From Octopus sinensis (taxonomy: Eukaryota): 64,000 bases of DNA. Every line of letters begins with the position of its first letter. The stretch's first letter is position 1. The notes beneath the pieces were generated by a model. That model was not told the DNA's origin. It made no database searches and was given only the letters and a program-made list of their open reading frames with translations. Of the stretch, positions 2,581 through 62,874 are shown in pieces. Location of the stretch: contig NC_042999.1 of the NCBI RefSeq assembly GCF_006345805.1, forward strand, positions 145,018,001 through 145,082,000. Direction: 5' to 3'. The translations under genes and the position numbers were made by a program.

Positions 2581-3519
2581 GTATATGCATATCGTTTCTT
2601 CTTACATCCATTTTTTTCCATGCTAGCATGGATTAAAAGAAACATTGAGGTAAATTACTTTTTCATGGTGGAGCTTAGAGTAGGCAAAGTGGTAAATAAT
2701 AGTGGGTAGAATATTGGTTTAAAAATTCCTTCGGATGGAAAAAAGTTGAAGTTTTATCTATTCCAAATGCCATTAGTAAAAAATATTTCATTTCATATCA
2801 CACAAAATTTCAAAATTCTTGTTGTAATATTGAGGTATTGCTATTGCTACAAGATGTTCTTCATGTTGCCACCTGGTTTTCAGGTAAGAGATCCCTTATT
2901 CCACCTGTCTTTGAAGGCTCAAAGCCAACAAATGATTCTTTTTGAGAAGGGAAATGACAACAGTGTCACCATTTGTATCTCAGTAAATTTGGAGAAGTGC
3001 TAATGTAATTAAACATATAGACTCACATGTGTGTGTTTCCTTGGTTGGGTATAAGTAAAGAACATTGTTTTTATATATGCTACATTGAAAGAACATTACA
3101 ATAATTAATGGCAATAAAAGAAATACAAAATATTAATACCAAACGGTAATCTTAATCTCCAACTTTATGTGGTGATTGTGAAAGACCACAGAAGACTGTG
3201 TTATTTACTTTGAAAGAACCTGTCATAAGAACTCATGGTGCATAAGAGTACTTGTAATTATATCGTTGACAGATGAGAATTGTCTGCAACAGCTGCTGGA
3301 ACTGTCAGACCATGTGATTTGATCCGGCTGTGGGTTCCTTAGTGACAGATGTCCAACAGTCATCAATGATATATAGAAATATCATTGTCTGTTCAGGCAC
3401 TGGTGTCAAAAATAGCCAATGGGCTTATTAAAATAAACCTCCACATTTAAGAACATTATTATTCCAAAACAAACATAAAGGAATGATAAGAAAATATGAA
3501 AAATCCTTAATGGGAAACA

Positions 3520-4860
3520 CTAAACTTGACGAGACTGGCTTTTTCTGGAAGGGGATGCCTTCCAGAATGTACTCCATGAAGGATGAAGCCAGAGCCCCAG
3601 CATTTAAGGCACAAAAGGACAGAGTGAGGTTAATCATGTGTGGCAATGCTACTGGCTTCATGATAAAATCAGGATTTATCTACAAGTCTGCGAACCCAAG
3701 GGCCTTCAAAACTAAGAATAAAAATCTGATGCCTGTCCACTGGATACACAACACCAAGGCCTGGATTACCAAAAGTCTAACTTTCATTTGGTTCCACCAA
3801 TGCTTCATCCCTCAAGCCAAAGAATGCCTCCAAAATATTTGCATGGAATTCAAGGTGTTGCTTGTTATGGATAATGCTGGTAGTTACTCTTTGGATTTGA
3901 ATCATGAGGGAGTTTAAGTTGAGTTCCTCGCTGCCAACATCACCTCCCTCATCTAGCCTATGGATCAAGGTGTGATCTATGCCTTCAAGGCACTCTACAC
4001 TTGGAACTCTCTCCAACACCTTGTGGATGCAATGGGTTCAGACGACAATTTCAAGTTAAAGGAGTACTGGCGTAACTTCATGATTGCAACATACCTGTCA
4101 GTCATCCACACTGCTCCTTAAGACATGCAAAAAGAAACTCTCATCGCATGCTGGGAGAAGGTGTGGCCTGAGTGTGTCCATGACTACAAGGGCTTCTCCA
4201 CTGAAGATATTCAGCACGAATGCAGTGAAACTGGCAAAGGTTTCAATGACACCACATAAGACGAGGTCAATGACCTCATTGATGCCCACTCTGAAACCCT
4301 GATAGATGAAGATTTGTTGGAGTTAACAAAGTCAGCCAGCGAAGAGGAGGAAGTGCTAGATCCAGAGGAAGAGGAGGATGAGGTGGATTTGGCAATCAAG
4401 TGTCTGTCCAACCTTTTAAGGACAGCAAAGGAATTTCAAGGGAAGGCAGAAGCATGGGATCCCTATATGGTTTGGTCTCTCCAATTTAAAAATGCCATCG
4501 ATGCTCTCATGCTGACATATAAAACTCTCCTCACCACCATGAAGAAACAATGACAGCAACTTCCTATCATAATGTTCCTTAAGCCCATCAAGAAAGCCTT
4601 GCATGAAGATACAACATCCCCTAAAACACCTGAAGAAGAGGTGTCATCTGGAGAGCTTTAAATCTTTGCTGTGCAGTCATTACCTTCATTATTTTCATCA
4701 TCATCGTCTTAAATCAATATCATTCATTATTGGTAACAGTGCTTTAATTTTTATTAAATATTATATATATAATATTTTACATCATATTTTGACATTTATA
4801 GGCATTTTTATGGACCATGTCAAATATTTGCGGTTTTTCACTATGTACAGGTAGGGGACT
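3520..4860 (+). mobile_element. Tigger/pogo DNA transposon remnant (DDE_1 transposase pseudogene, 5' truncated)
   Basis: DETGFFWKGMPSR..KAQKDRV...CGNATG...W..N.KAWIT...WFHQCFIP...KVLLVMDNA, followed by a stop- and frameshift-damaged VEFL.AN.TSLIQPMDQGVI.AFK and an acidic C-terminus; typical TIGD1/Tigger motifs. Confidence 0.92.
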
Positions 4861-16994: not shown

Positions 16995-18715
16995 AGTTTG
17001 GTTTTGTGCCAGGAACAAGCACCACTGATGCTATATTTCTGGTAAGATAGCTGCAGGAGAAATTCATAGCCAAAGATAAACCTCTGTATTTGGCCTTTGT
17101 TGACTTGGAGAAAGCTTTTGACAGGGATCCCCGATCCCTTATCTGGTGGTCAGTGTGGAAACTAGGGATATACAAGTGGTTGGAGAGAGCTGTACAAGCC
17201 ATGTATAAGGATGCTACCAGTAGGTGAGGGTTGGCAATGAGTACAGTGAAGAATTCAGGGTACAAGTAGGGGTTCACCAAGGATCAGTGCTCAGCCCCCT
17301 CTTGTTCATCATAGTCCTCCAGGCAATAACAGTGGAATTTATGACAGGCTGCTCCTGGGAGCTCCTCTTTGCTGATGTCTTTGCTCTAATAGCTGAATCA
17401 CTACCAGAACTAGAGAAATTTCAGGTATGGAAGCAAGGTCTAGAATCAAAGGACCTTAGAGTTAACCTAGCAAAACCAAAGTAGTAGTAAATAGGAGGGT
17501 AGACAAATCATAAATCCATTCAGGTAGATGGCAATCTGTAGGAAAGACGTAGGTAGAAACTCTATAAGATGCACCCGGTGTAAGCTTTGGACACATAAAA
17601 AGTTCCGCAATATCAGAGGAAGGTCAACAAGGAAGCTAGCTTTTGTATGTGGAAGATGCACAGGTACAATAAATACTGAAAATGTGCAGAAAATAAACTG
17701 CCAGGGAGACAAGCTAGAGGTAGTAGATAGCCTCCGTTATCTAGGTGACTGAGTTAGTAGTAGAGAGGGATACTCCGAGAGCATAGCTGTGAGGAAAAGA
17801 TTAGGCTGGCCAGCTCAGAGAGCTCCTACCTCTGTTTGCAATAAAGGGCCTTTCTCTCAGAGTGAAAGGCAGAATTTATGTGCCTGTGTGCAAACTGCCA
17901 TACTACATGGCAGTGAAACATGGGCTGTGACATTCAAGGACATGTGTAGGCGTGAAAGAAAGACAGTATGCTTTGTTGGTTCTACAATGTAAGTGTGTAT
18001 GTTCAGAGTGTAAGCATCTTGAGAGAAAAGTTAGGCATAAGAAGCAGCAGATGTGGTGTGCAAGAGAGAGAAACAAGTGTGCTGGTATGGTTATGTGATG
18101 TGTATGGACAAGGGCAGCTGTGTAAAGAAGTGCTGATCTCTAACTGTGATAGAGGTGGACCCAAGAAGACGTGATGAAGTGGTGAAGCAAGAACTTTGAA
18201 CTTTGAGCCTCACAGAGGCAATGATTAGTGACTGAGACCTTTGGTGATAGGCTGTGCTTGAGAAGTCACATCAAGCCAAATGAAATTGTAAACTTGGTTG
18301 TTGTTGGTGTCACATAATAGGTACCCATGCCAGTGGCACATTTGAGTATTGGGCCTCATGGCGACAAAGTTCCTTTCAAGCATTGGGCCGCAAAGTGGCT
18401 GAGTTCCTTTTAATTGTTGGGCCTCATGGAGGCAGTGATCGAGACCTTTGGCATTACATCATGCTTGAGAAGACCCATCAAGCTGAGCAAAATCGCAGTC
18501 ATGGCAGATAGTGGTGTCATGCAAATGGCACCCATGCTGGTGGCGCGTAAAAGCACCCATTACATTCTCGGAGTAGTTGGCGTTGGGAAGGGCATCCAGC
18601 CATAGAAAACAATGCCAAATCAGACAGGAGTCTGGTGCAGCCTCCCAACATACCAGCCCAGGTCAAACCATCCGACCCATGCCAGCATGGATGACAGACG
18701 TTAAATGATGATGAT
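16995..18715 (+). mobile_element. 5'-truncated RTE-clade LINE (RT pseudogene, 3' UTR and (ATG)n tail)
   Basis: QFGFVPG.STTDAIFLV, LYLAFVDLEKAFD, VGVHQGSVLSPLLFIIV, ELLFADV, a Cys-rich insert, LHGSETW and a tail gcatggatgacagacgttaaatgatgatg; contains stops and frameshifts. Confidence 0.95.
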
Positions 18716-18986
18716 ATATACTTCATTATTATTAAAGCTGCAAAAACATCACAAAAATATCACAAAAAACTGCTGCTTAGAGAAGGACAGTTTAGATTGA
18801 GAATGGAACAAAATAAAGATTGTATGTATAAGATATATAATTTACATTGACAGATGCACATTGGAAATTGGTTTCTTTTCATTGGTCCTTTTGAGTAACG
18901 GTTTTTTCTAATCAATGATGATAGGTTTAAAATTAGTAGTACAAGCATTTTATTATATGAGGTCTTTTGATGGTATTCTATAACTA

Positions 18987-19037
18987 GATAAGGAAACCAT
19001 GATGGTCCTCTGGCGGACATTCGTCCTCAGCCGCCTG
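18987..19037 (+). other. 51-bp internal fragment of the CR1-type LINE ORF2
   Basis: Matches 20863-20913 with 3 mismatches in 51 bp; no LINE tail. Confidence 0.85.
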
Positions 19038-19474: not shown

Positions 19475-19965
19475 CACGGGATGAGGTGGTGAAGCACGAC
19501 CTTCGAATGTTGGGCCTCACAGAGGCGATGTCGAGTCACTGAAACCTTTGGAGATATGCTGTGCTTGAGAAACCCCTGGCAAGCCAAGTCAGACACCTGT
19601 GCTGGTGGAATGTAAAAAGCAACATTCGAGTGTGGTCGATGCTAGTGTCGCCTGACTAGTCCTGTACCTGTGGCACATAAAACGCAACATTTGAGCATGG
19701 TTGTTGCCAGTGCTGACTGACCGGCTTGTGTACCAGTGGCACGTAAGAAGCACCATTCAAACCTGGTCGGCATCAATAGCGCCTGACAGTGGCATGTAAA
19801 AAGCACCCATAACGCTCTTTGAGTGGTTGGCGTTAAGAAGGGTATCCAGCTGTAGAAACTTTGCCTGATCAGATTGGAACCTGATACAGCCTTCTGCCTT
19901 GCCACTTCTCAGTCAAAACATCTAACCCATGCCAACATGGATAGTGGATGTTAAGTGATGATGAT
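19475..19965 (+). mobile_element. RTE LINE 3' end (WDEVVKHDL.. plus repeat-containing 3' UTR)
   Basis: Same terminal sequence as the copies at 18170-18715 and 50230-50865. Confidence 0.9.
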
Positions 19966-20049
19966 AATATAAATGTATATACATTTATGTATGTAAATGT
20001 ATATATATATGTATGTATATATAATATATATATATATATATAATATATA

Positions 20050-20083
<34 letters not shown>

Positions 20084-20097
20084 CTATGCAGAGAGAG

Positions 20098-20534
20098 AGA
20101 GTGGTTGTATAATGTCAACATAACGTGACGGTCCTGTAAAGGGAATTACACCACCGCTATATAGCCCTAGGAAGCATCGACGCTTCCTGTCGGCTTTGAC
20201 ACATTTCCTGTGTCCTTATATTTGCAAAGAGGAGGCGAGCACCCCCACCAGCTAGGACTAGCAACCTGAAGACATGCATGTTTCTGGATTTTGCCCGTCA
20301 TCGGTCCAGGGTAGCAAGTCCCGCTAGCGGTGATACTTGCCAAGCCACCGCAAATATATATATTTACAGTGAAATCTACTCACTGGTCACCGTAATTAGA
20401 AATATTGAATTTCTAAATGTCTCATAGAGACATGAGCAGTGGTGGCGCAATAGAGTGGTTGTATAATGTCAACATAACGTGACGGTCCCGTAAAGGGAAT
20501 TACACCACTGCTATATAGCCCTAGGAAGCATCGA
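20098..20534 (-). mobile_element. 354-bp hammerhead-containing unit with an 83-bp terminal direct repeat (retrozyme-like, or PLE terminal repeat)
   Basis: 20098-20180 equals 20452-20534 with 2 mismatches (period 354). No credible ORF, many hairpins, and one HHR at 20265-20310. Confidence 0.8.
20251..20328 (-). ncRNA. Type I hammerhead ribozyme with variant core CCGAUGA and extended stem I
   Basis: Minus strand CCUGGA-CCGAUGA-CGGG/CAAAA/UCCA-GAAA-CAUGCAUG-UC^UUCAGG. Stem I CCUGGA/UUCAGG is extended after an internal loop by GGACU/AGUCC and GCUAG/CUAGC. Palindromic ACAUGCAUGU stem III, GUC triplet (cut between 20271 and 20270). Confidence 0.75.
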
Positions 20535-21499
20535 TGATACGAAAGTCTTGCAGAAAATACAGAACCCCAGCAATGTTGCACACCTGCAGCAGGAGTTGGA
20601 TTCAATGTACAGATGGGCTGAGGATAATAATATGCAGTTTAATGCTGAAAAATTCCAGGCCCTGCGCTACCAGCATCCAAAACTGAATATTAAACTTACA
20701 GGGTACACCGGTCCACAGGGAATTTCAATCCCAGAGCCTAAGTTAGTGAGGGACCTGGGTATTGACATGAGTGATGATACCTCTTTCCAAGTGCACATTA
20801 CCAGGATGGCGACAAAGTGCAGACGACTGGCTGGCTGGATCCTAAGAACATTCAGAACCAGAGATAAGGAAACCATGATGGTCCTCTGGTGGACATTCGT
20901 CCTTAACCGCCTGGATTACTGCTCACAGCTATGGTCACCCACCAGTGTGAACTTAACAGCGGACCTTGAAGCAATCCAGAGAAGATTCACAAAGAAGTTT
21001 GTCTCTTTGCAACAGCTCAGCTACTGGGAAAGGTTGAAACAGCTAAGACTCTACTCCCTGGAGAGAAGACAGGAGAGGTATGCAGTAATGTATATCTGGA
21101 AGATCCTGGAAGGAATTGTGCCAAATTTTGGCATTGAAAGCTACACCAATTCCAGAATGGGATGACACTGCATAGTACCAAAGATCCCAGCAATGCCATC
21201 ATGCTTCAGGACCAGTTACAGCAACAGCCTGGGTTTCAAGGGCCCACAGCTTTTTAATATTCTCCCAAAGAGTCTGAGGAACTTGCATGAAGTGGTTTTT
21301 AAATCAAAGCTGGACCTCTTCCTGTCGAGAGTCCCAGATGAACCTACCTCACGGCAAGAGGTGCAAATGAGGGTAGCTATATCAAACTCCATTCCTCACT
21401 AAGTGCCACATATTAGAGGAGGCTCTTAGTAATAACAGTGAAGCACAAAACGGCGGTGCATCAGCATGGCCACAGCTCTGAGCTGAAACCAAAATAAAA

Positions 21500-21500
<1 letters not shown>
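20531..21500 (+). mobile_element. 5'-truncated CR1-group LINE (RT C-terminus, 3' UTR stem-loop)
   Basis: Begins at gat gat acg aaa gtc (DDTKV of the catalytic motif); ..LDSMYRWAEDNNMQFNAEKF..VRDLG..RLDYCSQLWSP..LEAIQRRFTK..SLERR; one stop at 21163-21165, then ..FNILPKSLRN..FKSKLDLFLSRVPDEP. Confidence 0.93.
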
Positions 21501-21578
<78 letters not shown>

Positions 21579-21598
21579 TATGTATATATACATACATA

Positions 21599-21680
<82 letters not shown>

Positions 21681-21694
21681 GTATATAGATACAT

Positions 21695-23622
21695 ATATCA
21701 TCATCATCGTTTCATGTCCATTTTCCATGCTGTCATGGGTTGGACGGCTCGACTGGGATCTGCGAAGTCAGGAAGCTGCACCAGGCTCCAATCTGATCTG
21801 ATGGTGTTTCTACAGCTAGATGCCCTTTCTAACGCCAACCACTCCGAGGGTGTAGTGGGTTCTTTTAACGTGCCACCGGCACGGGGCCCAGAGTGGCTGG
21901 CATCAACCACAATCGAATGGTGCCTTTTACGTGCCGCTGGCACGGGATTCCAGTCACAGCGGCACTGGCATCAGCCACGTTCGGATGATGCTTTTTATGT
22001 GCTACCGGCAGTGGGGGGTCACAACTTCAATTTCCATTCGATTTGATTTTGATATTGCTGATGTTGATGGACTTGACTCAATAGGTGTCCTCAAGTATGG
22101 CATGTCGCCCTACGATCAAGGTACTTTTGAGTGGGCTGGTTATGCAACACTGGTGTAGGTTACAGCTGGTTATGTGAAGCTGGTGTAGGATATGCCATGA
22201 ACTCACTTTATTTGATGGGTCTTCTCAGTCACATCATACCTCCTGAGGTTTCGGCTTTTTGTCATTGCCTCTGTGAGGCCCAACATTGGAAGGTCATGCT
22301 TCACCACCTCATCCCATGTCTTCATGGGTCTCCCTCTACCCCAAATACCTTTCACTGTTTGGGAGTGGCACTTCTTCACACAGCTCTCCTCGTCCATCCA
22401 CAATACATGCCCATACCAATGCAAATGTCTCTCTTGCATGCCACATCCAATGCTTCTCATGTCTAATGTTTTTCTCAGGGCGCTTACACTCTGTCGTGTG
22501 TGCACAGTGACATTACACATCCAGCAGATCATGCTAGCTTCATTTCTTTCAAGCCCACACATGTCTTCAGCAGTCACGGCCCATGTTTCACTGCTGTGAA
22601 GCATGGCAGTTCACACACATGCATCGTACAATCTACCTTTCACTCTGAGCGAGAGGGCCTTTGTCACCAGAAGCTTTCTGAACTTTGCCCAGGCTATTCT
22701 TATTCTAATGGTAACACTCTCTGAGCATCCACCACCAAACAGACTAGGTAGTGGAAGCTATCAATTACTTTTAGTTTCTCCCTCTGGCATGTGATGGAGT
22801 CTGTTTTCTGAGCATCTGTGGTGTTTATTGCCCCTGTTCCTCTGCTGCACATGAAAGCTATCTTCTTGGTTAATCTTCCTTTGGTGTTGCTGCACCTCTT
22901 ATATGTCCATAGCTTACACTGAGTAAATCTTATGGAGTTTCTACCTACACCTTTTCTACAGATCGAGTAGAGCCACTTACCTGAAGGGGTGTGTGATGTG
23001 TCCACCTTCCTACTTACTAGAAGTTTGGTCTTTGTAACATTGACTCGAAGGCCTTCGATTCTAAACCTGGCTTCCACACTTTGAAGTTTCTTCTCTAGTT
23101 CCGGTAGTGATTCTGTTATGAGGGCTAGGTCCTCAGCATAGAGGAGCTCCCAGGGGCAACCTGTCTTGAATTCCTCTGTTATTGCCTGGAGGACTATGAT
23201 GAATAAGATGGGCTGAGGGCTGACTCTTGGTGGGCCCCTAATTCTACCTGGAATTCTTCACTATACTCATTTCCAATCGTAACCCTACTGACGGCATCTC
23301 TTTATAGGGCCAGTACACCCCTTATTAACCATTTGTCAATCCCAAGTTTCTGCATCGCCCACCAAATAAGGGATTGGGGGACCCTGTCAAACACTTTCTC
23401 CAAGTCCACAAAAGCTGAATATAGGGGTTTATCTTTAGCTAGGTATTTCTCCTGCAGTTGCCGTACAATGAATATAGCATCAGTGGTGCTTCAACCTGGC
23501 ACAAAACCAAACTGCATTTCATCTAAGCGGACTCTCTCCCTAATTAGTTGGGCTATGACCCTCTCTGTGACCATCATCACCTGATCCAGCAGTTTGATAC
23601 CCCTGTAGTTATTTCTACCTAA
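21695..23622 (-). mobile_element. 5'-truncated RTE-clade LINE
   Basis: RNNYRGIKLLDQVM..LDEMQFGFVPG; GLRVNVTKTK..ICRKGVGRNSI..; LHSSETWAVTAED..RGRPMKTWDEVVKHDL; 3' UTR repeats and (CAT)n tail at 21695. Confidence 0.95.
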
Positions 23623-29909: not shown

Positions 29910-30995
29910 TTGTATATATGTTTATATATATATAAACACCCGAATGCGAGAGCTGGCGTCCCGACCCATCACATAGATAGGAATAAGCATATATGGTTTG
30001 TAATTCCCTTTGGTAAGCAGATTAGAACTAACCTCCCCCTCATGTTTAGACAAGCTATCGCCAATAACTTCCCCAGAAATTCCAAATATTACTCCACGGT
30101 TAACTCGCATAAAGTTAGGATAGCTTTCTCCTACACTAAAAACCTCGCCCAGATAATCGCCTCCCATAATAATAGGCTGCTTACTAAGACCCATTCACCT
30201 TTTTCCGGAGGCACAGCCTCTTCCGCTCCCGGTTTAATGCTCAGTAGGAATAATTATAGTAGGAATAATGATATGAGAGCCAGTACAGTGACTCATAATC
30301 TCAGCTCCAGCCAGGGATTACACACTAGGGGTATAGTTATAAATAGGGGTGTTGTAGTTGACGGTAACAATGGCAGTAGGGTAGAGAGTCCCAATAGCAA
30401 CCCCAGCATCATTTCCGGCAATAGCAGCACCACGGGCACTAGCAATGACAGCACTCTGATAGATAGTGGAGAATCAGGGGTTATTCCGTTAGTTAATAGT
30501 GACGTAGTGGAAAATAAAGTAGTAAGCGGCTGCAGTTCTCGTAACAAATATAGTGACAGTAACGCAGTTCTAATTTCAGAAACTAATCCTAGCAGAATAA
30601 GATTCACGTCGGCGAACTCCAAGATCAGAAACGCCGTCTACCAATGCAAGGTTTACACGGACTCAGATGTCTACGCTTATGTAGGGGCCTCATCGTCAAG
30701 ATTGGCTTTGCGAATCTCCAATCATTACGCAACATTTCGAGACATGAACAAGCGCCAGACCACGGGACTCAGCAAGCTAATATGGCGATTGAAGGATACG
30801 AACTCAAGCTACAGGCTGGAATGGTCAATTTTGTCGGTGGCCCTCCCATTTGATAGGGGCAGAAGGAAGTGCAACCTTTGTGTCTCCGAACTCTTCCATA
30901 TATTGTTCGCCAGAGACCGGATGGTAAACGGACTTTTACAGTCGGCTTTTCGATGCCCCCATTGGCGGCGTTACACTTATCTGGCTTATAAATAA
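29910..30995 (+). CDS. PLE polyprotein C-terminal part: post-RT linker, low-complexity insert and GIY-YIG-type endonuclease (361 codons open; the ORF-track start lies in microsatellite and is not a real start)
   Basis: KHIWFVIPFGKQIRTNL..NNFP..KVRIAFSYTKNLAQIIASHN resembles IIWFNPP.SK.V.TNI..KHFP..VKVSYSC.PN...II..HN. NAVYQCKV..YAYVGASS..R..NHYATF..TTGLSKLIWRLK..LEWSIL..CNLCVSE..RCPH matches the PLE GIY-YIG C-terminus. Confidence 0.8.
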   Translation: MYICLYIYKHPNARAGVPTHHIDRNKHIWFVIPFGKQIRTNLPLMFRQAIANNFPRNSKYYSTVNSHKVRIAFSYTKNLAQIIASHNNRLLTKTHSPFSGGTASSAPGLMLSRNNYSRNNDMRASTVTHNLSSSQGLHTRGIVINRGVVVDGNNGSRVESPNSNPSIISGNSSTTGTSNDSTLIDSGESGVIPLVNSDVVENKVVSGCSSRNKYSDSNAVLISETNPSRIRFTSANSKIRNAVYQCKVYTDSDVYAYVGASSSRLALRISNHYATFRDMNKRQTTGLSKLIWRLKDTNSSYRLEWSILSVALPFDRGRRKCNLCVSELFHILFARDRMVNGLLQSAFRCPHWRRYTYLAYK

Positions 30996-39639: not shown

Positions 39640-41030
39640 GTTAAATTATGGAAAAATTAAATGAAATGTTTTTTAAAAAATATTTCCATAGTTTTCAATT
39701 ACTCCAATGAACTTCCACATTGCATCAAAAAAAAAATTGTAATAGAAAGGCTAAAATTCATCTTGGAGAATAACTTCTTCGTCTTCAAAGACAACTTCTA
39801 TCAACAAAAATCAGGGACTGCAATGGGTACGAGAATGGCTCCCATCTTTTTTGCTAACCTAGTCACGGGATATCTAGAAATCAGTCTTTATTGTAAGGTA
39901 CTAGAAAAATATGGCAACACATTCTCCCTCTACATAGAAAATAACTGGAAGAGGTATCTGGATGACTGCTTCATTCTTTGGCATGACAGTACAGAGAAAC
40001 TTAAAGAATTTCAAATACTTAGAAATGGACTTTACATAAACATTCAATTTACCCTAACAACTTGCATTCCTTGACATTCTTAAGAAATCCAACAATAAAA
40101 TAGAAACAGATATATACTCTAAGCCTACAGACTCCAAGCAGTATCTACTGTTCAACTCATGCCACCCCAGACACACTAGAATGAATATCCCCTTCAACCT
40201 GGCAAAAAGGATTTGTACTATAGTTTCTAATACAAACACCAGGGACACACCACTTCATGAACTAAAGGATACACTCATCAGCAGGAATTACCCACCATCA
40301 CTAATTGATATAGGCTTTCAACGTGCCCTACAACTCAACATCCACAAACTCAGCCATCCCAAACTAAAGAAGGATTTATGGGTAAAAGCCCTACCATACA
40401 TCTCCACACACAACCCACTTAACAATGGAGCTTTTGACACCATCCTCCAGAAAATTTCCCTACTAAAAAGGGATCACAATGAATTTAATTCTCCAAATGC
40501 ACACCATCACAACGAGCAAAAGACAACCCAAGTCTATGAAAAATCTCCTAACACAAGCTCAAGTACACTTTGCAACAATACTGAAGCTGTCAGTAAAAGA
40601 ATGTGGAAGGGCTAACTGTGGTATATACATCAATCTAATTGAGGGATCAGAATTCCCTTTCAAACAGGGCCAATGTTTTACAGTAAAAAAGAACTTCATA
40701 TGTGCTTTGCAAAACCTAATATGCGTATTAACTTGCTCAGGGTGTCAAGAGCAGTACATAGGCCAAACCAGAAAATGTCTACGCCAAAGGATGACCCTAC
40801 ATAGATCCCAGATTAAAATTTGGGAATACAGAAAAAAAGCGTTCAGCGAACACATTGACATTTGCACCACTAACGAACAACCCAACTTTGGAATTTTTCC
40901 CCTCTATAAATTCAGGGATGACGCAACCTATAATAGGCGCATTAGCAAAGAGTCATAGTTTATCGCAAAATATAAACCTCTTTTGAATGCTTCCACCACA
41001 AATGACACTACTACAAAGGCCTTAGAATAA
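39640..41030 (+). mobile_element. Penelope-like element (Neptune-type) RT and GIY-YIG pseudogene, frameshifted
   Basis: ILENNFFVF..FYQQKSGTAMGTRMAP..ANL; WKRYLDDCFILW; FLDI..ETDIY.KPTDSKQYL.FNSCHP.HT..NIPFNLAKRI; NLICVLTCSGCQEQYIGQT..LRQRMTLHRSQI. Confidence 0.92.
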
Positions 41031-49993: not shown

Positions 49994-50865
49994 CTCACAA
50001 GAAATGAAGCCAGTATGCTCAGATGGATGTGTAATGTCAGTGTTCATACTCGACAGAGTGTAAGTACCTTGAGAGAGAAGTTGGACCTAAGAAGCATCAG
50101 TTGCAGTGTGCAAGAGAGACGTTTGCGGTGGTATGGCCATGTGGCGAGAATGGATGAAGATAGTTGTGTGAAAAAGTGCCACACCCTAGCTGTTGAGGGA
50201 ACCTGTGGAAGAGGCAGATCCAGGAAAACCTGGGATGAGGTGGTGAAACACGACCTCCGAACTTTAGGTCTCACCGAGGAAATGACTAGAGACCGAGACC
50301 TTTGGAAGTATGCTGTGCGTGAGAAGACCCGGCAGGACAAGTGAGACCATCACCCATGGCCTCAGTCCACTTATGAATACCTTCTTGGGACACAAAACCC
50401 TACTTGTGAAGACCTCTTGAGGCAAGTGAAAATCGAAAAATCAAAAATCAAAATTGATCAACATGAATGGAAATTGTAGCTGTGATACCAGTGCTGGTGG
50501 AACATAAGAGAACCATCCGAACATGGCTGTTGCCAGTGCCGCCCTGACTGGCTTCCATGCTGGTGGCACATAAAAAGCACCATCCAATCGTGGCCATTGC
50601 CAGCCTCGTCTGGCCTCCATGCCGGTGGCACGTAAAAAGCACCATCCGACTGTGGCCCTTTGCCAGCCTCATCTGGCACCTGTGCCGGTGGCATGTAAAA
50701 AGTACCCACTACACTCATGGAGTGGTTGGTGTTAGGAAGGGCATCCAGCCGTAGAAACATTGCCAGATCAGACTGGGCCTGGTGCAGCCTTCTGGCTTCC
50801 CAGACCCCAGTTGCACCGTCCAACCCATGCCAGCATGGAAAGCGGACGCTAAACGATGATGATGA
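49992..50865 (+). mobile_element. Young RTE LINE 3' end, directly after (TA)n
   Basis: LTRNEASMLRWMCNVSV..RLRWYGHVARMDEDSCVKKC..GRGRSRKTWDEVVKHDL..QDK*; 3' UTR repeats; tail gcatggaaagcggacgctaaacgatgatg. Confidence 0.95.
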
Positions 50866-50884
50866 TGATATATATATATATATA

Positions 50885-51178
50885 TTCGAGTGAGGTTGTT
50901 GCCAGTGCCGCTGGACTAGCTCCTGTGCAGTTGGCACATAAAAAGCACCATTTAAGTGTGGCCATTGCCAGTACTGCCTGACTGGCCCTTGTGCCAGTGG
51001 CACATAAAAGCACCCACTACACTTTCGGAGTGGTTGGCGTTAGGAAGGGCATCCAGCTGTAGAAACTCTGCCAGATCAGATTGGAGTCTGGTGCAGCCAT
51101 CTGGTTCGTCAGACCTCAGTCAAATCATCCAACCCATGCTAGCATGGAAAGCGGACGTTAAATGATAATGATGATGAT
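50885..51178 (+). mobile_element. Second RTE 3' UTR-only copy immediately downstream
   Basis: Repeats the 3' UTR units and the tail. Confidence 0.85.
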
Positions 51179-51225
51179 ATATATATACATACATATATAC
51201 ATACACACACACACATCAATTTATA

Positions 51226-51261
<36 letters not shown>

Positions 51262-54991: not shown

Positions 54992-55025
<34 letters not shown>

Positions 55026-56467
55026 ATATATATATATATATGTATAGATCATTATCAATTAATGTCAATTGTCCATGCTGGCATGGGTTGGATGGTTTGA
55101 TTGGGCTGGCATGCTAGAAGGCTGCACCAGGCTCCAGTCTGATTTGGCATGGTTTTCAATGGCTGGTTGTCCTTCCTAATGCTAACCACTCCGAGACTGT
55201 AACGTGTGCTTTTATGTACCACCAGCATGGGCGCCATTTGCTACATTTGATTCCTACTATGCCCAACTTTTCTCTCAATCCATTTGCATTTTGCCATACA
55301 TGTACACTGATGGTGCACATCCAACAGAGCATACAACCTTCATTTCTCTCAAGTCTATTCATGCCTGTGCCTTTATTTTTTTTCTTTACTAAAACATACA
55401 AAAGCTATGACTTTCTGTTTTCCTTTCTGCTTATAGAATGTAAATTTGGCATCATTAAATAATGAGAGTGTATCCCTGCTTTCTTTCTCAAAGAAACAAG
55501 GCTCTGAGATTAAGAAGCTTGCTTTGCAATCACATGGTTTTGGTTCCAGTCCCACTGCATGGTACCCTAGGCAAGTGTCTTCTACAGTAGCCTTGGGCTG
55601 ATCATTATCTTGTGATTGAATTTTGTAGATAAAAACTGTGTGGAAGCCCATCGTGTGTGTGTTTCTCCCCTTGTATTTATTGTCCCTCTTGTCACTTGAC
55701 AGCTGGTGTTGGTTTGACTGTATCTCCATAACTTAATGATTTTGGCAAACGGGACTGAAAGAATAACTGCCAGACTAAAAAGAAACAAGTACTAGAATCC
55801 ATTTCATCAACTAAAACCCTTTAAGGCAGTGCCGCAGCATGGCCACAGACCAGTGACTGAAACAAGTAAAAGATAAAATATAAATTAGGATTAGGATAGA
55901 TTGACAGACAGATATGTAGGAGATTGATAGGAATTGGAGGGAGGGAGAGAGAAATAGATTGCAGGTGGCCAGCAAGTGAATCAGGAAATTAGATGAGCCG
56001 GCAAAATGAACCACAAAAGTGGTGGTCACTAGAACTGGAAACTTGAGATCTTTGGTTTCCTTGTCACTTTTCTTTCTTTGACTAAAATTTCTGATATTTT
56101 AGGAGAGTGACAAAAAGATAAAAAAATCTTCCTTTGCTTGTTTGTGAGCACATAAAACTGTGTGGCTATTAGATTATTTAGTGAATGACTGAACAAGTAG
56201 TCAGCAAATTGATGTTTTTCACATTTTTGTTTTTTAATTTCTTTATTTAAAAGAAATAAATATAATTGGTCTTGCATTTGGCCTGGCAATTAAAAGTCTG
56301 AAGAAAACTGTGTAGGCTTTCTACAAACTGCTAATTACCTAAGCCAAGATTGTATGGCTGAAAATGATCTAAATACAGTAATTACGCAAACTCTAAAAGT
56401 ATCTTATTTTGAACAATGTGTACATGTGCATCAATGTATGTATATATGTGTGTGGTGTGTGCATACA

Positions 56468-58236: not shown

Positions 58237-59480
58237 TCATCATCATCATCGTTTAACGTCTGCTTTCCATATTAGCATAGGTTGGACGGTTCAACTGGGG
58301 TCTGGGAAGCCAGAAGGCTGCACCAGGCCCAGTCTGATCTGCCAGTGTTTCTACAGCTGGATGCCCTTCCTAACGCCAACCACTTTGTGAGTGTAGTGGG
58401 TGCTTTTTATGTGTCACCGGCACAGGTGCCAGACAAGGCTGGCAAACGGCCACGATCGGATGGTGCTTTTTACGTGTCACCAGCACGGAGACCAGACAAG
58501 GCTGGCAACGGCCATGATTGGATGGTGCTTTTTACGTGCCACCGGCACGGAGGCCAGTTAGGGCGGTGCTGACTACGATCACGTTTGGATGGTTCTCTTA
58601 CGTGCCACCGGCACTAGTATCACAGCTACAAATTCCATTGATGATGATCGATTACGATTTTGATTTCGATTTTTGATTTTCACTTGCCTCAAGAGGTCTT
58701 CACAAGTAGAGTTTTGTGTCCCAAGAAGGAAAGGAATGCATAAGTGGACTGGCTACATCCCAGGTAGAGGCCATGGGTTATGGCCTCACTTGTCCTGCCG
58801 GGTCTTCTCATGCACAGCATACTTCCAAAGGTCTCGGTCTCTAGTCACTTCCTCGGTGAGACCTAAAGTTCGAAGGTCGTGCTTCACCACCTTGTCCCAG
58901 GATTTCCTGGGTCTACCTCTTCCACAGGTTCCCTCAACCGCTAGGGTGTGGCACTTTTCGACACAACTATCTTCATCCATTCTCGCTACATGGCCATACC
59001 AGTGCAAACGTCTCTCTTGCACACCACAACTGATGCTTCTTAGGTCCAACTTTTCTCTCAAGGTACTTACACTCTGTCAAGTATGAACACTGACATTACA
59101 CATCCATCAGAGCATACTGACTTCATTTCTTGCGAGCTTATGCATATCCTCAGCAGTCACGGCCCATGTTTCACTGCCATGTAGCATGGCTGTTCATACA
59201 CATGCATCATACAATCTGCCTTTTACTCTGAGCAAGGGGCCTTTTGTCACCAGCAGAGGTAAGAGCTCTCTGAACTTTGCCCAGGCTATTCTTACTCTAG
59301 CAGTTACACTTTCAGCACACCAGCCCCCCGCTACTGACTTGGTCACCTAGGTAACGGAAGCTATCAACTATTTCTAGTTTTTCTCCCTGGAATGTTGCGG
59401 AAGATGGTCTCTGCGTATTTTCAGTGTTTATTGCTCCTGAGCATCTGCCACATACAAAAACTATCTTCCTAGTTAGTACA
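58237..59480 (-). mobile_element. Young 5'-truncated RTE LINE, same subfamily as 49992-50865, inverted
   Basis: REKLDLRSISCGVQERRLHWYGH..QDK*; same 3' UTR repeats and tail; 5' junction has a short duplication (ctatcttccta) and abuts (TA)n. Confidence 0.95.
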
Positions 59481-60697: not shown

Positions 60698-62874
60698 TTA
60701 ATGATAATGAGTAAATATTGAGGAATGACTATTTATATAGATATTATTATTAATATCTTATAACTCCTTTTTCTAGAAGGTAGGTGCTTTGTGCGCCCTT
60801 ATGATTGATATATATATATATAAATTAGAATAAGTCCTGGGGTCGATTTGCTCGACTAAAGGCGGTGCTCCAGCATGGCCACAGTCAAATGACTGAAACA
60901 AATAAAAGAATATATATATATATATATATTCACACATGCACACACACTCACACATGTATATACCTATATATTTCTTGTTGGCCACTTACTGTGTAGCAGT
61001 ATCCTCAACATTTTACTATTGGTAAACACAATCACTGGAGTTAAAATTGCACAGATAACAGAAGAATATAATAGTATCTTAATTAAACTCTGTTACATAC
61101 ACACATGCATGCACATGTGTGTGTATGTGTGTATATGTGATTGTGTGTTTAAGTTTTTGTGTATATCTTTCAGAAAGAAAACCAATAAAATAGTGCTTTC
61201 AAATAAAAATTCCTTGTGTGATGTTTGTTCTTCTCTTACTGCTCTAAGTGCAGTTAACTAGTCATTGATCCTGTAACAAACAGGACTATTGTTCGAAAAT
61301 TGCACCATAAAGTAATAAATAAATAAGCATTGGCATCATGTTACTTGTTATTTATTTTATTTATATGGAGATTGTGTTTATTACTGTACAGATATCTTTA
61401 TTGTATGTGCAGCCACAATGAAAATATTACATTCCCCTTAATAAGTTATGCTGAATTTTGTCCTTTTGATGGACAACTCAATTAATAAATTTTCTTTAAC
61501 CAAACACTCTGAAACTTTGGATACTGGTAGATTGTGTCGTATAGAACATCCGTTTTGCCAATAGTTAAAGACGGTTAAGACTTTAAAGCTTTTTGGGATG
61601 TTGGAGAATCGCATGCTGTGCTTTGAAAGTAAAGTCAAACTGAGGGTTCATACCTCTATTTCTATTTTAATGGTAGATGGATAAAACTTTTTGGAGATTA
61701 AGTTTCTCAGTCAAGGTTGTGACCACAGCTCCACACTTTTAATGAAATATGAAATTTTTAAGTACTTCCATTGGCGGGTTGACACTCCTCTTGCCTTGAC
61801 CAGCTGTTGTTCTTGAATGGGGTTATGATTGACACTAATCTGTTTTATTTTGCAGCTGTAAATGCAAACAAATAGATATAGATGGGAGAAGTGTCTTATT
61901 TTCTACCCAGTTGTATAGAAATTTAAGATAAGAAACAATTAAGCCATATGAGTCATTGTGGTTTAAAAAGAGATTAATGATTGTATGCAAGAAAGAGAGG
62001 TAGAAAACATAAATAACACACCTGCATAACTGAGTTTTGTCCTCCTCATCATTATCATCTTTGTCCATTATAGTGGATTTAAAAGTCTGTTTTTCCATGC
62101 TAGAATAAGCTAGATGAATCAGCATGCTGAGATCTCATCTTAATCACTCTGTCTTCTGCCAAAGATCCTTTCCATTACCAATACACAATACTTTTTTTAC
62201 TCAGCAATTTCTCCATTTGTATTATATATATATCTATACAATCAATTATATTGAGAAGAATATTTCAGTTCTACTAGGAAAAGCACACTCATGTACTCAC
62301 ACATGCACGTATGCACGCACACACGCGTGCACACACACACACACACACACTTTTACCCTTAAAGGGCATTTTGGCTGAAACTATCTCATTCAATATATTT
62401 TTGTTTCCAATATGGCTGGATATGATTTGAGGGAGATTTAGTTGCTATTTCTAGAAAATTGAGTGACCACATTAAGGTACCACTGTTGGCCACCAATAAC
62501 TGGTCCTCTGGCAGTTATAATGACAAATGTTCCAGTTGGTCTGATCAACAGAACAGCCTGCTCATGAAACTAATGTGCATGTGGCTGAGCACTCCATTGA
62601 TACATATATCCTTAATGTAGTTCTTAGGGAGAGTTAGTGTGGCACAGAATGAATGTGACAAGGTTGGCCTTTTGAATTACAGGTACTACTCATTTTTACC
62701 AGCTGACAGGACTGAAGCATTTGTGAAATAAAGTGTCTTGCTCAAGGACAATGTACCACTGGGAACTGAACTTGTGACCTTCAATTGTGAGCTAAATACT
62801 CTAACCAGTAAACAGTGTGCCTTCACTGTTGGCCACCATTAGTGATTAGTTGGTACTCTTTGGTCTCTATTGAG

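Follow-up and report, generated by a model that had tools for sequence, protein, structure and literature searches.

What is the origin of a short, non-coding and strongly self-pairing sequence that stands in slightly more than one tandem copy against a truncated retrotransposon? The question is raised by a 437-bp insert at positions 20098-20534 of a 64-kb stretch of Octopus sinensis DNA (NC_042999.1, positions 145,018,001 to 145,082,000 of the forward strand), the whole of which we call the window. The answer bears on animal retrozymes, which are abundant small circular RNAs whose mobilising element is still debated. A preliminary description of the locus, made from the sequence letters, had proposed an integrated retrozyme or circular RNA carrying a hammerhead ribozyme. 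Our analysis leads us, on balance, to regard the insert as a DNA copy, made by reverse transcription and now inert, of a ~354-nt retrozyme-type RNA with a variant type-I hammerhead, and probably as a new cephalopod-lineage member of the non-long-terminal-repeat (non-LTR) retrozymes, represented by one dead copy. The repeat itself is real and non-random; its reading as a retrozyme is the best available, is held with somewhat more belief than doubt, and rests on a single degenerate copy that has no obvious function at the locus.

The 354-nt unit and its predicted fold

The insert is made of two parts:

20098..20451, minus strand: full 354-nt monomer, structured and non-coding (from the repeat spacing, the fold and the lack of an open reading frame (ORF) or homolog)
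20452..20534, minus strand: partial second copy, 83 nt or 0.23 unit (98% identity to 20098-20180)

The preliminary description had reported a period of 354 with an 83-bp terminal redundancy and two mismatches, and this geometry was recovered in full: the direct repeat 20098-20180 / 20452-20534 has a start-to-start spacing of exactly 354 nt and 98% identity, so that the insert amounts to 1.23 copies, the second of which terminates within the loop of a GGAAGC/GCUUCC hairpin. Both mismatches (20135 T versus 20489 C; 20155 C versus 20509 T) are CpG/TpG differences, one CpG having decayed in each copy. Since insertion, two of the ten CpG sites in the overlap have thus decayed, with 0 non-CpG differences in 83 nt, and the two copies must therefore have been identical at origin and derived from one template sequence. 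Tandem Repeats Finder did not report the 354-nt repeat because only 1.23 copies are present.

The unit is non-coding, as had been suggested. Its longest stop-free frame, read in tandem context, is 75 aa, and no match was returned when its six frames, concatenated, were queried against 5.8 billion proteins. An exhaustive HMMER search with a 70-aa frame returned three weak matches, all of which we judged spurious; the best of them (P0208) is a repetitive bacterial surface protein whose score was inflated by repeat summation. The GC content is 46%. The CpG observed/expected ratio (o/e) is 0.75, compared with 0.30 for the 64-kb window, in agreement with the earlier remark that CpGs are retained; copies of a neighbouring repeat, named X below, have values of 0.5-0.65.

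As RNA, the minus-strand monomer has a minimum free energy (MFE) of -132.1 kcal/mol, compared with -97.0 +/- 5.1 for dinucleotide shuffles (z -6.9), and the plus-strand monomer one of -114.2 kcal/mol (z -4.5). Folded as circles, the two strands reach -125.9 (z -5.8) and -109.2 kcal/mol (z -4.7), respectively. When the MFE of all 354-nt windows was regressed on GC, the minus strand ranked third of 354 window-strands, and the top places otherwise went to windows that overlap microsatellite tracts of (TA)n/(AC)n, which makes the minus strand of the unit the most structured non-microsatellite 354-nt window in the 64 kb. Its advantage of 17-18 kcal/mol over the plus strand points to G-U pairs and hence to an RNA functional in the minus sense; from these fold models, we infer that the minus strand is the functional sense of the unit. 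All the minus-strand hairpins that had been listed are present and form in the MFE fold. In the predicted circular structure, helix I of the hammerhead-like motif described below forms and extends as a long, imperfect stem of ~40 bp into a multibranch body, which, as modelled, is how a type-I hammerhead should lie within a circular RNA.

A hammerhead-like motif on the minus strand

On the better-folding strand, from 20313 to 20265, the unit reads UAC-CCUGGA-CCGAUGA-CGGGCAAAAUCCA-GAAA-C-AUGCAU-G-U-C/UUCAGG, where the slash marks the predicted cleavage. With our own relaxed descriptor and a reading by eye, we assign its parts as follows:

20313->20265, minus strand: hammerhead-like type-I motif
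20313-20311, minus strand: loop-1 triplet UAC
20310-20305, minus strand: helix I, 5' strand, CCUGGA
20304-20298, minus strand: core CCGAUGA, with C in place of U4 (U4C)
20297-20285, minus strand: helix II, CGGG-CAAAA-UCCA, with a C10.1/A11.1 mismatch, 3 bp
20284-20281, minus strand: GAAA
20280-20273, minus strand: helix III, C-AUGCAU-G
20272 and 20271, minus strand: U16.1 and C17
20271/20270, minus strand: predicted cleavage
20270-20265, minus strand: helix I, 3' strand, UUCAGG

The earlier claim of one hammerhead thus holds as far as a type-I-like motif on the minus strand, with its predicted site at 20271/20270, is concerned; the motif is not a canonical one. It departs from the consensus in three ways, namely C for U4, C/A at 10.1/11.1 (leaving a 3-bp helix II) and a two-pair helix III, which consists, with the A15.1-U16.1 pair, of 2 bp closing the palindromic hexaloop AUGCAU.

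Our descriptor allowed one core mismatch and an open 10.1/11.1 position, and over both strands of the window (128 kb) this motif was its sole match; no second hammerhead was found on either strand or beside the Penelope-like element (PLE) fragment that the window also holds. In simulations, the descriptor is expected to match by chance 0.3-0.7 times per 128 kb and 0.002-0.004 times per unit. The peripheral features of the motif are rare among 168 such random matches: a perfect 6-bp helix I occurs at a frequency of 0.083, a UAC triplet exactly 6 nt 5' of the core at 0.012, a CAAA-type loop 2 at 0.095 and a GUC triplet at 0.042, and a palindromic helix III loop was seen in 0 of the 168. As the motif joins five features resembling the Schistosoma-derived hammerhead Sm1, a chance hammerhead was rejected on the strength of this joint-feature simulation. 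From its sequence, we conclude that the motif is probably a genuine hammerhead derivative of canonical metazoan type, with a predicted activity that is uncertain and probably reduced.

Relation to known hammerhead RNAs

The motif closely resembles the Schistosoma Sm-alpha/Sm1 and the newt and axolotl satellite hammerheads. The Sm1 layout was taken from the Sm1-derived ribozyme N79, GUAC-AUCCAG-CUGAUGA-GUCC-CAAAUA-GGAC-GAAAC...GUC/CUGGAU (PMC12550524). With these the unit shares a 6-bp helix I, the UAC internal-loop triplet, a CAAA-type loop 2, the GAAAC...GUC arrangement and a very short helix III with a palindromic loop, which implies dimeric action. It differs from them in its core (CCGAUGA, theirs being CUGAUGA), in its helix II (CGGG/UCCA with a basal C/A, where theirs is GUCC/GGAC) and in its hexaloop AUGCAU, where they have a tetraloop.

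Metazoan non-LTR retrozymes are described as type-I hammerheads in tandem repeats of 150-450 bp, from dimers to multimers, with a GC below 50%, non-coding and highly self-paired; they are expressed as circles of 170-400 nt and coexist with PLEs, and both LINEs (long interspersed nuclear elements) and PLEs have been left as candidates for their mobilisation (Cervera & de la Pena 2020, PMC7229834). A 2026 preprint derives vertebrate retrozymes from the pseudo-long terminal repeats (pLTRs) of PLEs. The proposed retrozyme identity stands on size (354 nt), GC (0.46), lack of coding content, self-pairing, the type-I-like layout with its Sm1-like periphery, and PLE coexistence. It is weakened by the altered core, the mismatched 10.1/11.1 and the lack of an Rfam match, and, although the 354-bp period lies within the range, by a locus that holds a single ribozyme in 1.23 copies of the unit, adjoins a LINE fragment directly and has no counterpart elsewhere in the window, whereas retrozymes occur as dimers to multimers. 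Within the molluscs, the 350-390-bp retrozymes of Mytilus galloprovincialis resemble the unit in size, in GC below 50%, in the lack of an ORF, in their branched, self-paired RNA, in a type-I topology with helix I opening into the body, and in PLE coexistence. Full-text searches of the available library found no paper on retrozymes or such hammerheads in octopus or other cephalopods.

Two further groups of hammerhead RNAs offer partial parallels. The hammerheads of PLE pLTRs share with the unit a link to retrotransposition, a tandem arrangement and a microsatellite target; unlike them, the unit has no adjoining PLE ORF, has a 354-nt period and shows a canonical rather than a minimal layout. The Avsunviroidae are of the same size class, with a branched, highly paired RNA, an unstable helix III and U4C as a natural variant, but the unit is integrated DNA in an animal genome and carries a ribozyme on one polarity only.

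The LINE junction and the target site

A feature that the preliminary description had not mentioned is that the right end of the insert is fused directly to a 5'-truncated non-LTR LINE on the strand opposite the hammerhead. The surroundings are as follows:

19475..19966, plus strand: 3' portion of 'X', an RTE-like LINE repeat, running out into (AT)n; context only
19967..20087, no strand: (AT)n microsatellite, left flank and target region
20088..20101, plus strand: GC(AG)6 tract, left junction
20535..21497, plus strand: 5'-truncated non-LTR LINE, C-terminal part of the reverse transcriptase (RT) and 3' untranslated region (UTR), from its ORF, a weak RVT_1 match and homologs
21498..21690, no strand: (AT)n/(AC)n microsatellite, either the tail of the LINE, what is left of the target, or both
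21700..22604, minus strand: inverted copy of repeat X, right side; context only

Across the right junction the plus strand reads ...GCATCGA/TGATACGAAAGTC..., and translation from 20530 gives IDDTKVLQKIQ... The LINE ORF spans 20548-21165 with a continuation at 21193-21402; besides the weak RVT_1 match it has 374 homologs, the best at 70% identity. These homologs read SFADDTR and the aligned similarity begins at DDTK, so the LINE is 5'-truncated inside its FADD box. A Logan contig with 78% nucleotide identity over 20587-21410 supports LINE homology to at least 20535. The joint between unit and LINE has a microhomology of about 2 nt (GA). An exact look-up of the LINE ORF found it not on record. 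The LINE frame breaks at 21165, resumes at 21193 and is ~20 residues short compared with the homologs; the LINE copy, or else its source, was defective already. At its 3' end (...TGAAACCAAAATAAAAAT, about 21497), the LINE matches an element end at 60858-60907 and is followed by (AT)n(AC)n. An orphan 52-bp piece at 18986-19037, with 94% identity to the LINE segment 20862-20913, lies 1.9 kb upstream in unrelated AT-rich sequence. At 20534/20535 the CpG o/e drops from 0.79 (insert) to 0.24 (LINE), while the GC is the same on both sides (0.46). This drop could mean that the two parts differ in age, as separate insertions would, or that the source of the LINE was CpG-poor and that of the unit was not.

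On the left, the (AT)n tract (19967-20087) is followed by TCTATGC(AG)6 up to the unit, and the final AGAG of (AG)6 doubles as the start of the unit, a 4-nt microhomology; the second copy is preceded by ...GCGCAAT ahead of AGAGTGG. Bracketed by the inverted copies of the abundant repeat X, the (TA)n tract looks like a repeatedly used insertion site. The 8-mer ATATCTAT flanks the composite of unit and LINE (20080-20087 and 21596-21603), and may represent a target-site duplication around the pair; with 7 occurrences in the window and a position within microsatellite, it is ambiguous.

How the copy may have arisen

In the life cycle that we propose for the family, transcripts of tandem genomic copies would be cut to monomers by the hammerhead, which probably works as a dimer by way of its palindromic helix III. 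A host ligase would circularise the monomers, and a retroelement RT, with either a circle or an uncleaved multimer as template, would copy more than one turn. The copy in the window is longer than one unit and continues unbroken through 20271/20270, the predicted cleavage/ligation site; the template was therefore a circle or an uncleaved multimer rather than a self-cleaved linear monomer. The earlier proposal of reverse transcription around a circle thus agrees with the length of more than one unit, the originally identical overlap and the unbroken site; a multimeric linear template fits the copy equally well.

LINEs are known to produce chimeric retrocopies by template switching, as in U6/L1 chimeras, in which the copy of a small RNA lies in the same sense at the 5' end of a 5'-truncated LINE; twin priming is a known variant of L1 integration. 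Our locus shares with LINE chimeras a 5'-truncated LINE, a short microhomology to an unrelated small-RNA copy and an AT-rich target. Unlike the same-sense U6/L1 chimeras, the ribozyme-bearing, better-folding strand of the unit is antisense to the LINE, which would fit twin priming or a plus-polarity template; further differences are that the partner is more than one unit long and that the microsatellite masks target-site duplications. Two routes of integration fit the junctions. In route (a), priming would take place on the top strand: the (AG)n 3' end from the left flank would pair with CUCU of the minus-sense RNA, plus-strand cDNA would be made over 1.23 turns with a stop in the loop of the GGAAGC hairpin, and the GA microhomology would serve to join it to a LINE, at the 5' end either of a cDNA or of a copy already resident; with a LINE cDNA, this would be a single, twin-priming-like retrotransposition event. 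As its template would be the hammerhead-bearing, better-folding RNA, route (a) would explain the antisense orientation to the LINE. Route (b), classical template switching by the LINE RT, would call for a plus-polarity RNA complementary to the ribozyme strand. A third possibility is that the unit was inserted independently, perhaps by a PLE, where (TA)n and LINE meet; PLEs of the Naiad clade favour (TA)n (PMC8557442).

The data do not allow a choice between route (a), route (b) and an independent insertion. Co-insertion of the unit with the LINE is possible but, in our estimate, has appreciably less than an even chance. We consider it rather unlikely, taken by itself, that the locus is a fossil of a LINE RT copying a hammerhead circular RNA by rolling-circle synthesis. 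If such a LINE capture were true, it would be direct evidence that LINEs, and not only PLEs, mobilise hammerhead circles; in any case, the microhomology junction with a truncated LINE is a concrete signature that bears on which RT mobilises animal retrozymes. Should a genome-wide search confirm the family, retrozymes would be extended to cephalopods and a natural U4C hammerhead variant would be added.

Evidence against the retrozyme reading and alternative explanations

Several observations weigh against the retrozyme-copy interpretation. The motif is matched by no Rfam hammerhead model, whether the whole window is searched at the gathering score or slices of 801 nt and 96 nt at E<=10; the Rfam matches obtained were microsatellite-driven, miRNA-like noise only. 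The C10.1/A11.1 mismatch breaks the normally conserved closing pair of helix II, which would be restored only by a hypothetical CpG->TpG change; judging from the sequence, A11.1 could indeed be the decay product of a C10.1-G11.1 pair. Decay does not explain the core, where C4 and G5 still make up a CpG; C4 was therefore probably carried over from the template. According to Perreault et al. (PMC3088659), a natural U4C change considerably decreases activity in vitro, although it supports viroid infectivity, and thus function in vivo, and 2-bp stems II are common in hammerheads. In isolation, the monomeric hammerhead fold reaches -4.2 kcal/mol, compared with -11.1 kcal/mol for an alternative fold. 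In favour of the reading, a dimer held together by the 10-nt palindrome ACAUGCAUGU gains about 12 kcal/mol in cofolding, and amphibian and newt hammerheads act as dimers (PMC7229834; PMC6155905); by analogy, the gain on dimerisation together with the weak monomeric fold would match these dimer-dependent ribozymes. A sensitive blastn search found no second copy of the unit within the window, exact-pattern scans with the ribozyme region gave 0 matches in viral, metagenome and prokaryote collections (which hold no cephalopod genomes), and no relative turned up in the protein, viral, metagenome and prokaryote collections searched. The reading draws on one sequence. As it has a single ribozyme, the locus itself is unable to release a unit-length RNA. 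Finally, a hammerhead strand antisense to the LINE is a misfit to the simplest U6/L1-type template switch.

The unit may instead have belonged to the LINE transcript, as a tandem 5'-UTR monomer of an internally deleted LINE or as the head of a SINE-like (short interspersed nuclear element) composite with a LINE 3' tail, in which case the 1.23 copies would be an ordinary truncated monomer array read in the plus sense. Mouse L1 promoters consist of tandem 5'-UTR monomers in truncated arrays, and the partial plus full copy layout of the insert resembles these; the unit also adjoins the LINE with no target sequence between them, and the possible ATATCTAT duplications flank the two together. We nevertheless regard this as improbable, given that the junction lies inside the catalytic FADD box of the RT and not at a UTR, that the fold and the hammerhead-like motif are on the strand opposite the LINE, and that the abrupt change in CpG o/e at equal GC argues for different histories. 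Equally doubtful is a local DNA tandem duplication, or the remnant of a 354-bp satellite without RNA function, cut on the right by insertion of the LINE, with the hammerhead-like motif as a decayed relic or a coincidence. A non-canonical hammerhead unseen by Rfam, a single locus within the window and a relaxed descriptor that matches random sequence at the rate given above would all suit this explanation. The joint Sm1-like features are, however, far below chance, the minus strand folds 18 kcal/mol better than the plus strand, no remainder of an array is seen beyond the LINE 3' end, and the overlap was identical at origin, unlike neighbours in an old satellite.

A further reading is that the unit is the ordinary pLTR of a PLE, carrying the hammerhead of that element. 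PLE pLTRs do carry hammerheads, PLEs insert as partial tandems and, in some clades, into (TA)n (PMC8557442), the 2026 preprint ties retrozymes to PLE pLTRs, and a PLE fragment is present in the window at 39661-40958 on the plus strand. This fragment is frameshifted and shows the RT motif YLDD followed by a C-terminal GIY-YIG domain (Pfam E 0.0056, below the cut-off); its homologs are RT plus GIY-YIG proteins of ~750 aa, the named ones (30-40% identity) belonging to Argonauta hians, Octopus bimaculoides and bivalves. It lies 19 kb from the unit, however, and the unit has no similarity to this region (39.6-41 kb); attachment to a PLE ORF, which the preliminary description had named as the mark of an ordinary terminal repeat, is not seen at the locus, where the adjacent ORF is that of a LINE RT on the other strand. 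Moreover, the period of a PLE partial tandem is the whole element (kilobases) and not 354 nt, and PLE hammerheads are usually minimal, without helix III or loop-loop contacts (PMC6155905), unlike the canonical layout of the motif. As period, neighbours and sequence all disagree, we reject this reading as having hardly any probability left. A 21-kb PLE locus of Octopus bimaculoides contains neither the unit nor a hammerhead, and shares with the window only dispersed repeats that are ~78-81% identical. A more far-reaching alternative is that the RNA copied by a LINE RT was an RNA-replicating, viroid-like circular agent of a cephalopod, of which the insert would be the endogenised cDNA; if so, animals would for the first time have yielded a trace of a viroid-like replicon. 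The source was hardly CpG-depleted (o/e still 0.75 now, with the limited CpG decay in the overlap since insertion), the unit has a single copy in the window and no relatives in the collections searched, simple template switching by a LINE would call for plus-polarity RNA, complementary to the hammerhead strand, and a natural U4C core is known from a viroid. Against this, animals have no established viroid-like replicon, CpG o/e values of 0.5-0.65 are found in the neighbouring X repeats too, absence from the collections means little where none gives a nucleotide search of cephalopod genomes, and retrozymes account for every feature more simply, so that we hold an exogenous replicon to be very improbable.

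Other features of the window

Repeat X, which flanks the locus on both sides, has multiple copies in the window with RTE-type C-terminal ORFs, and forms the inverted repeats I1/I2. Further copies lie at about 50150-51244, 58239-58980, 18101-18720 and 55006-55231, and internal tandem subrepeats of 65-68 bp are found at 19613-19769 and 21897-22010. An intact ORF of 361 aa at 29910-30995 on the plus strand has no Pfam match; in its C-terminal part, a GIY-YIG-like YVG...R...H pattern and a CxxC can be recognised by eye, and it may be a remnant of a Naiad-type PLE or another mobile-element protein. At 3483-3917, also on the plus strand, lies a fragment of a DDE_1 transposase of the pogo/Tigger type (Pfam E 3e-16).

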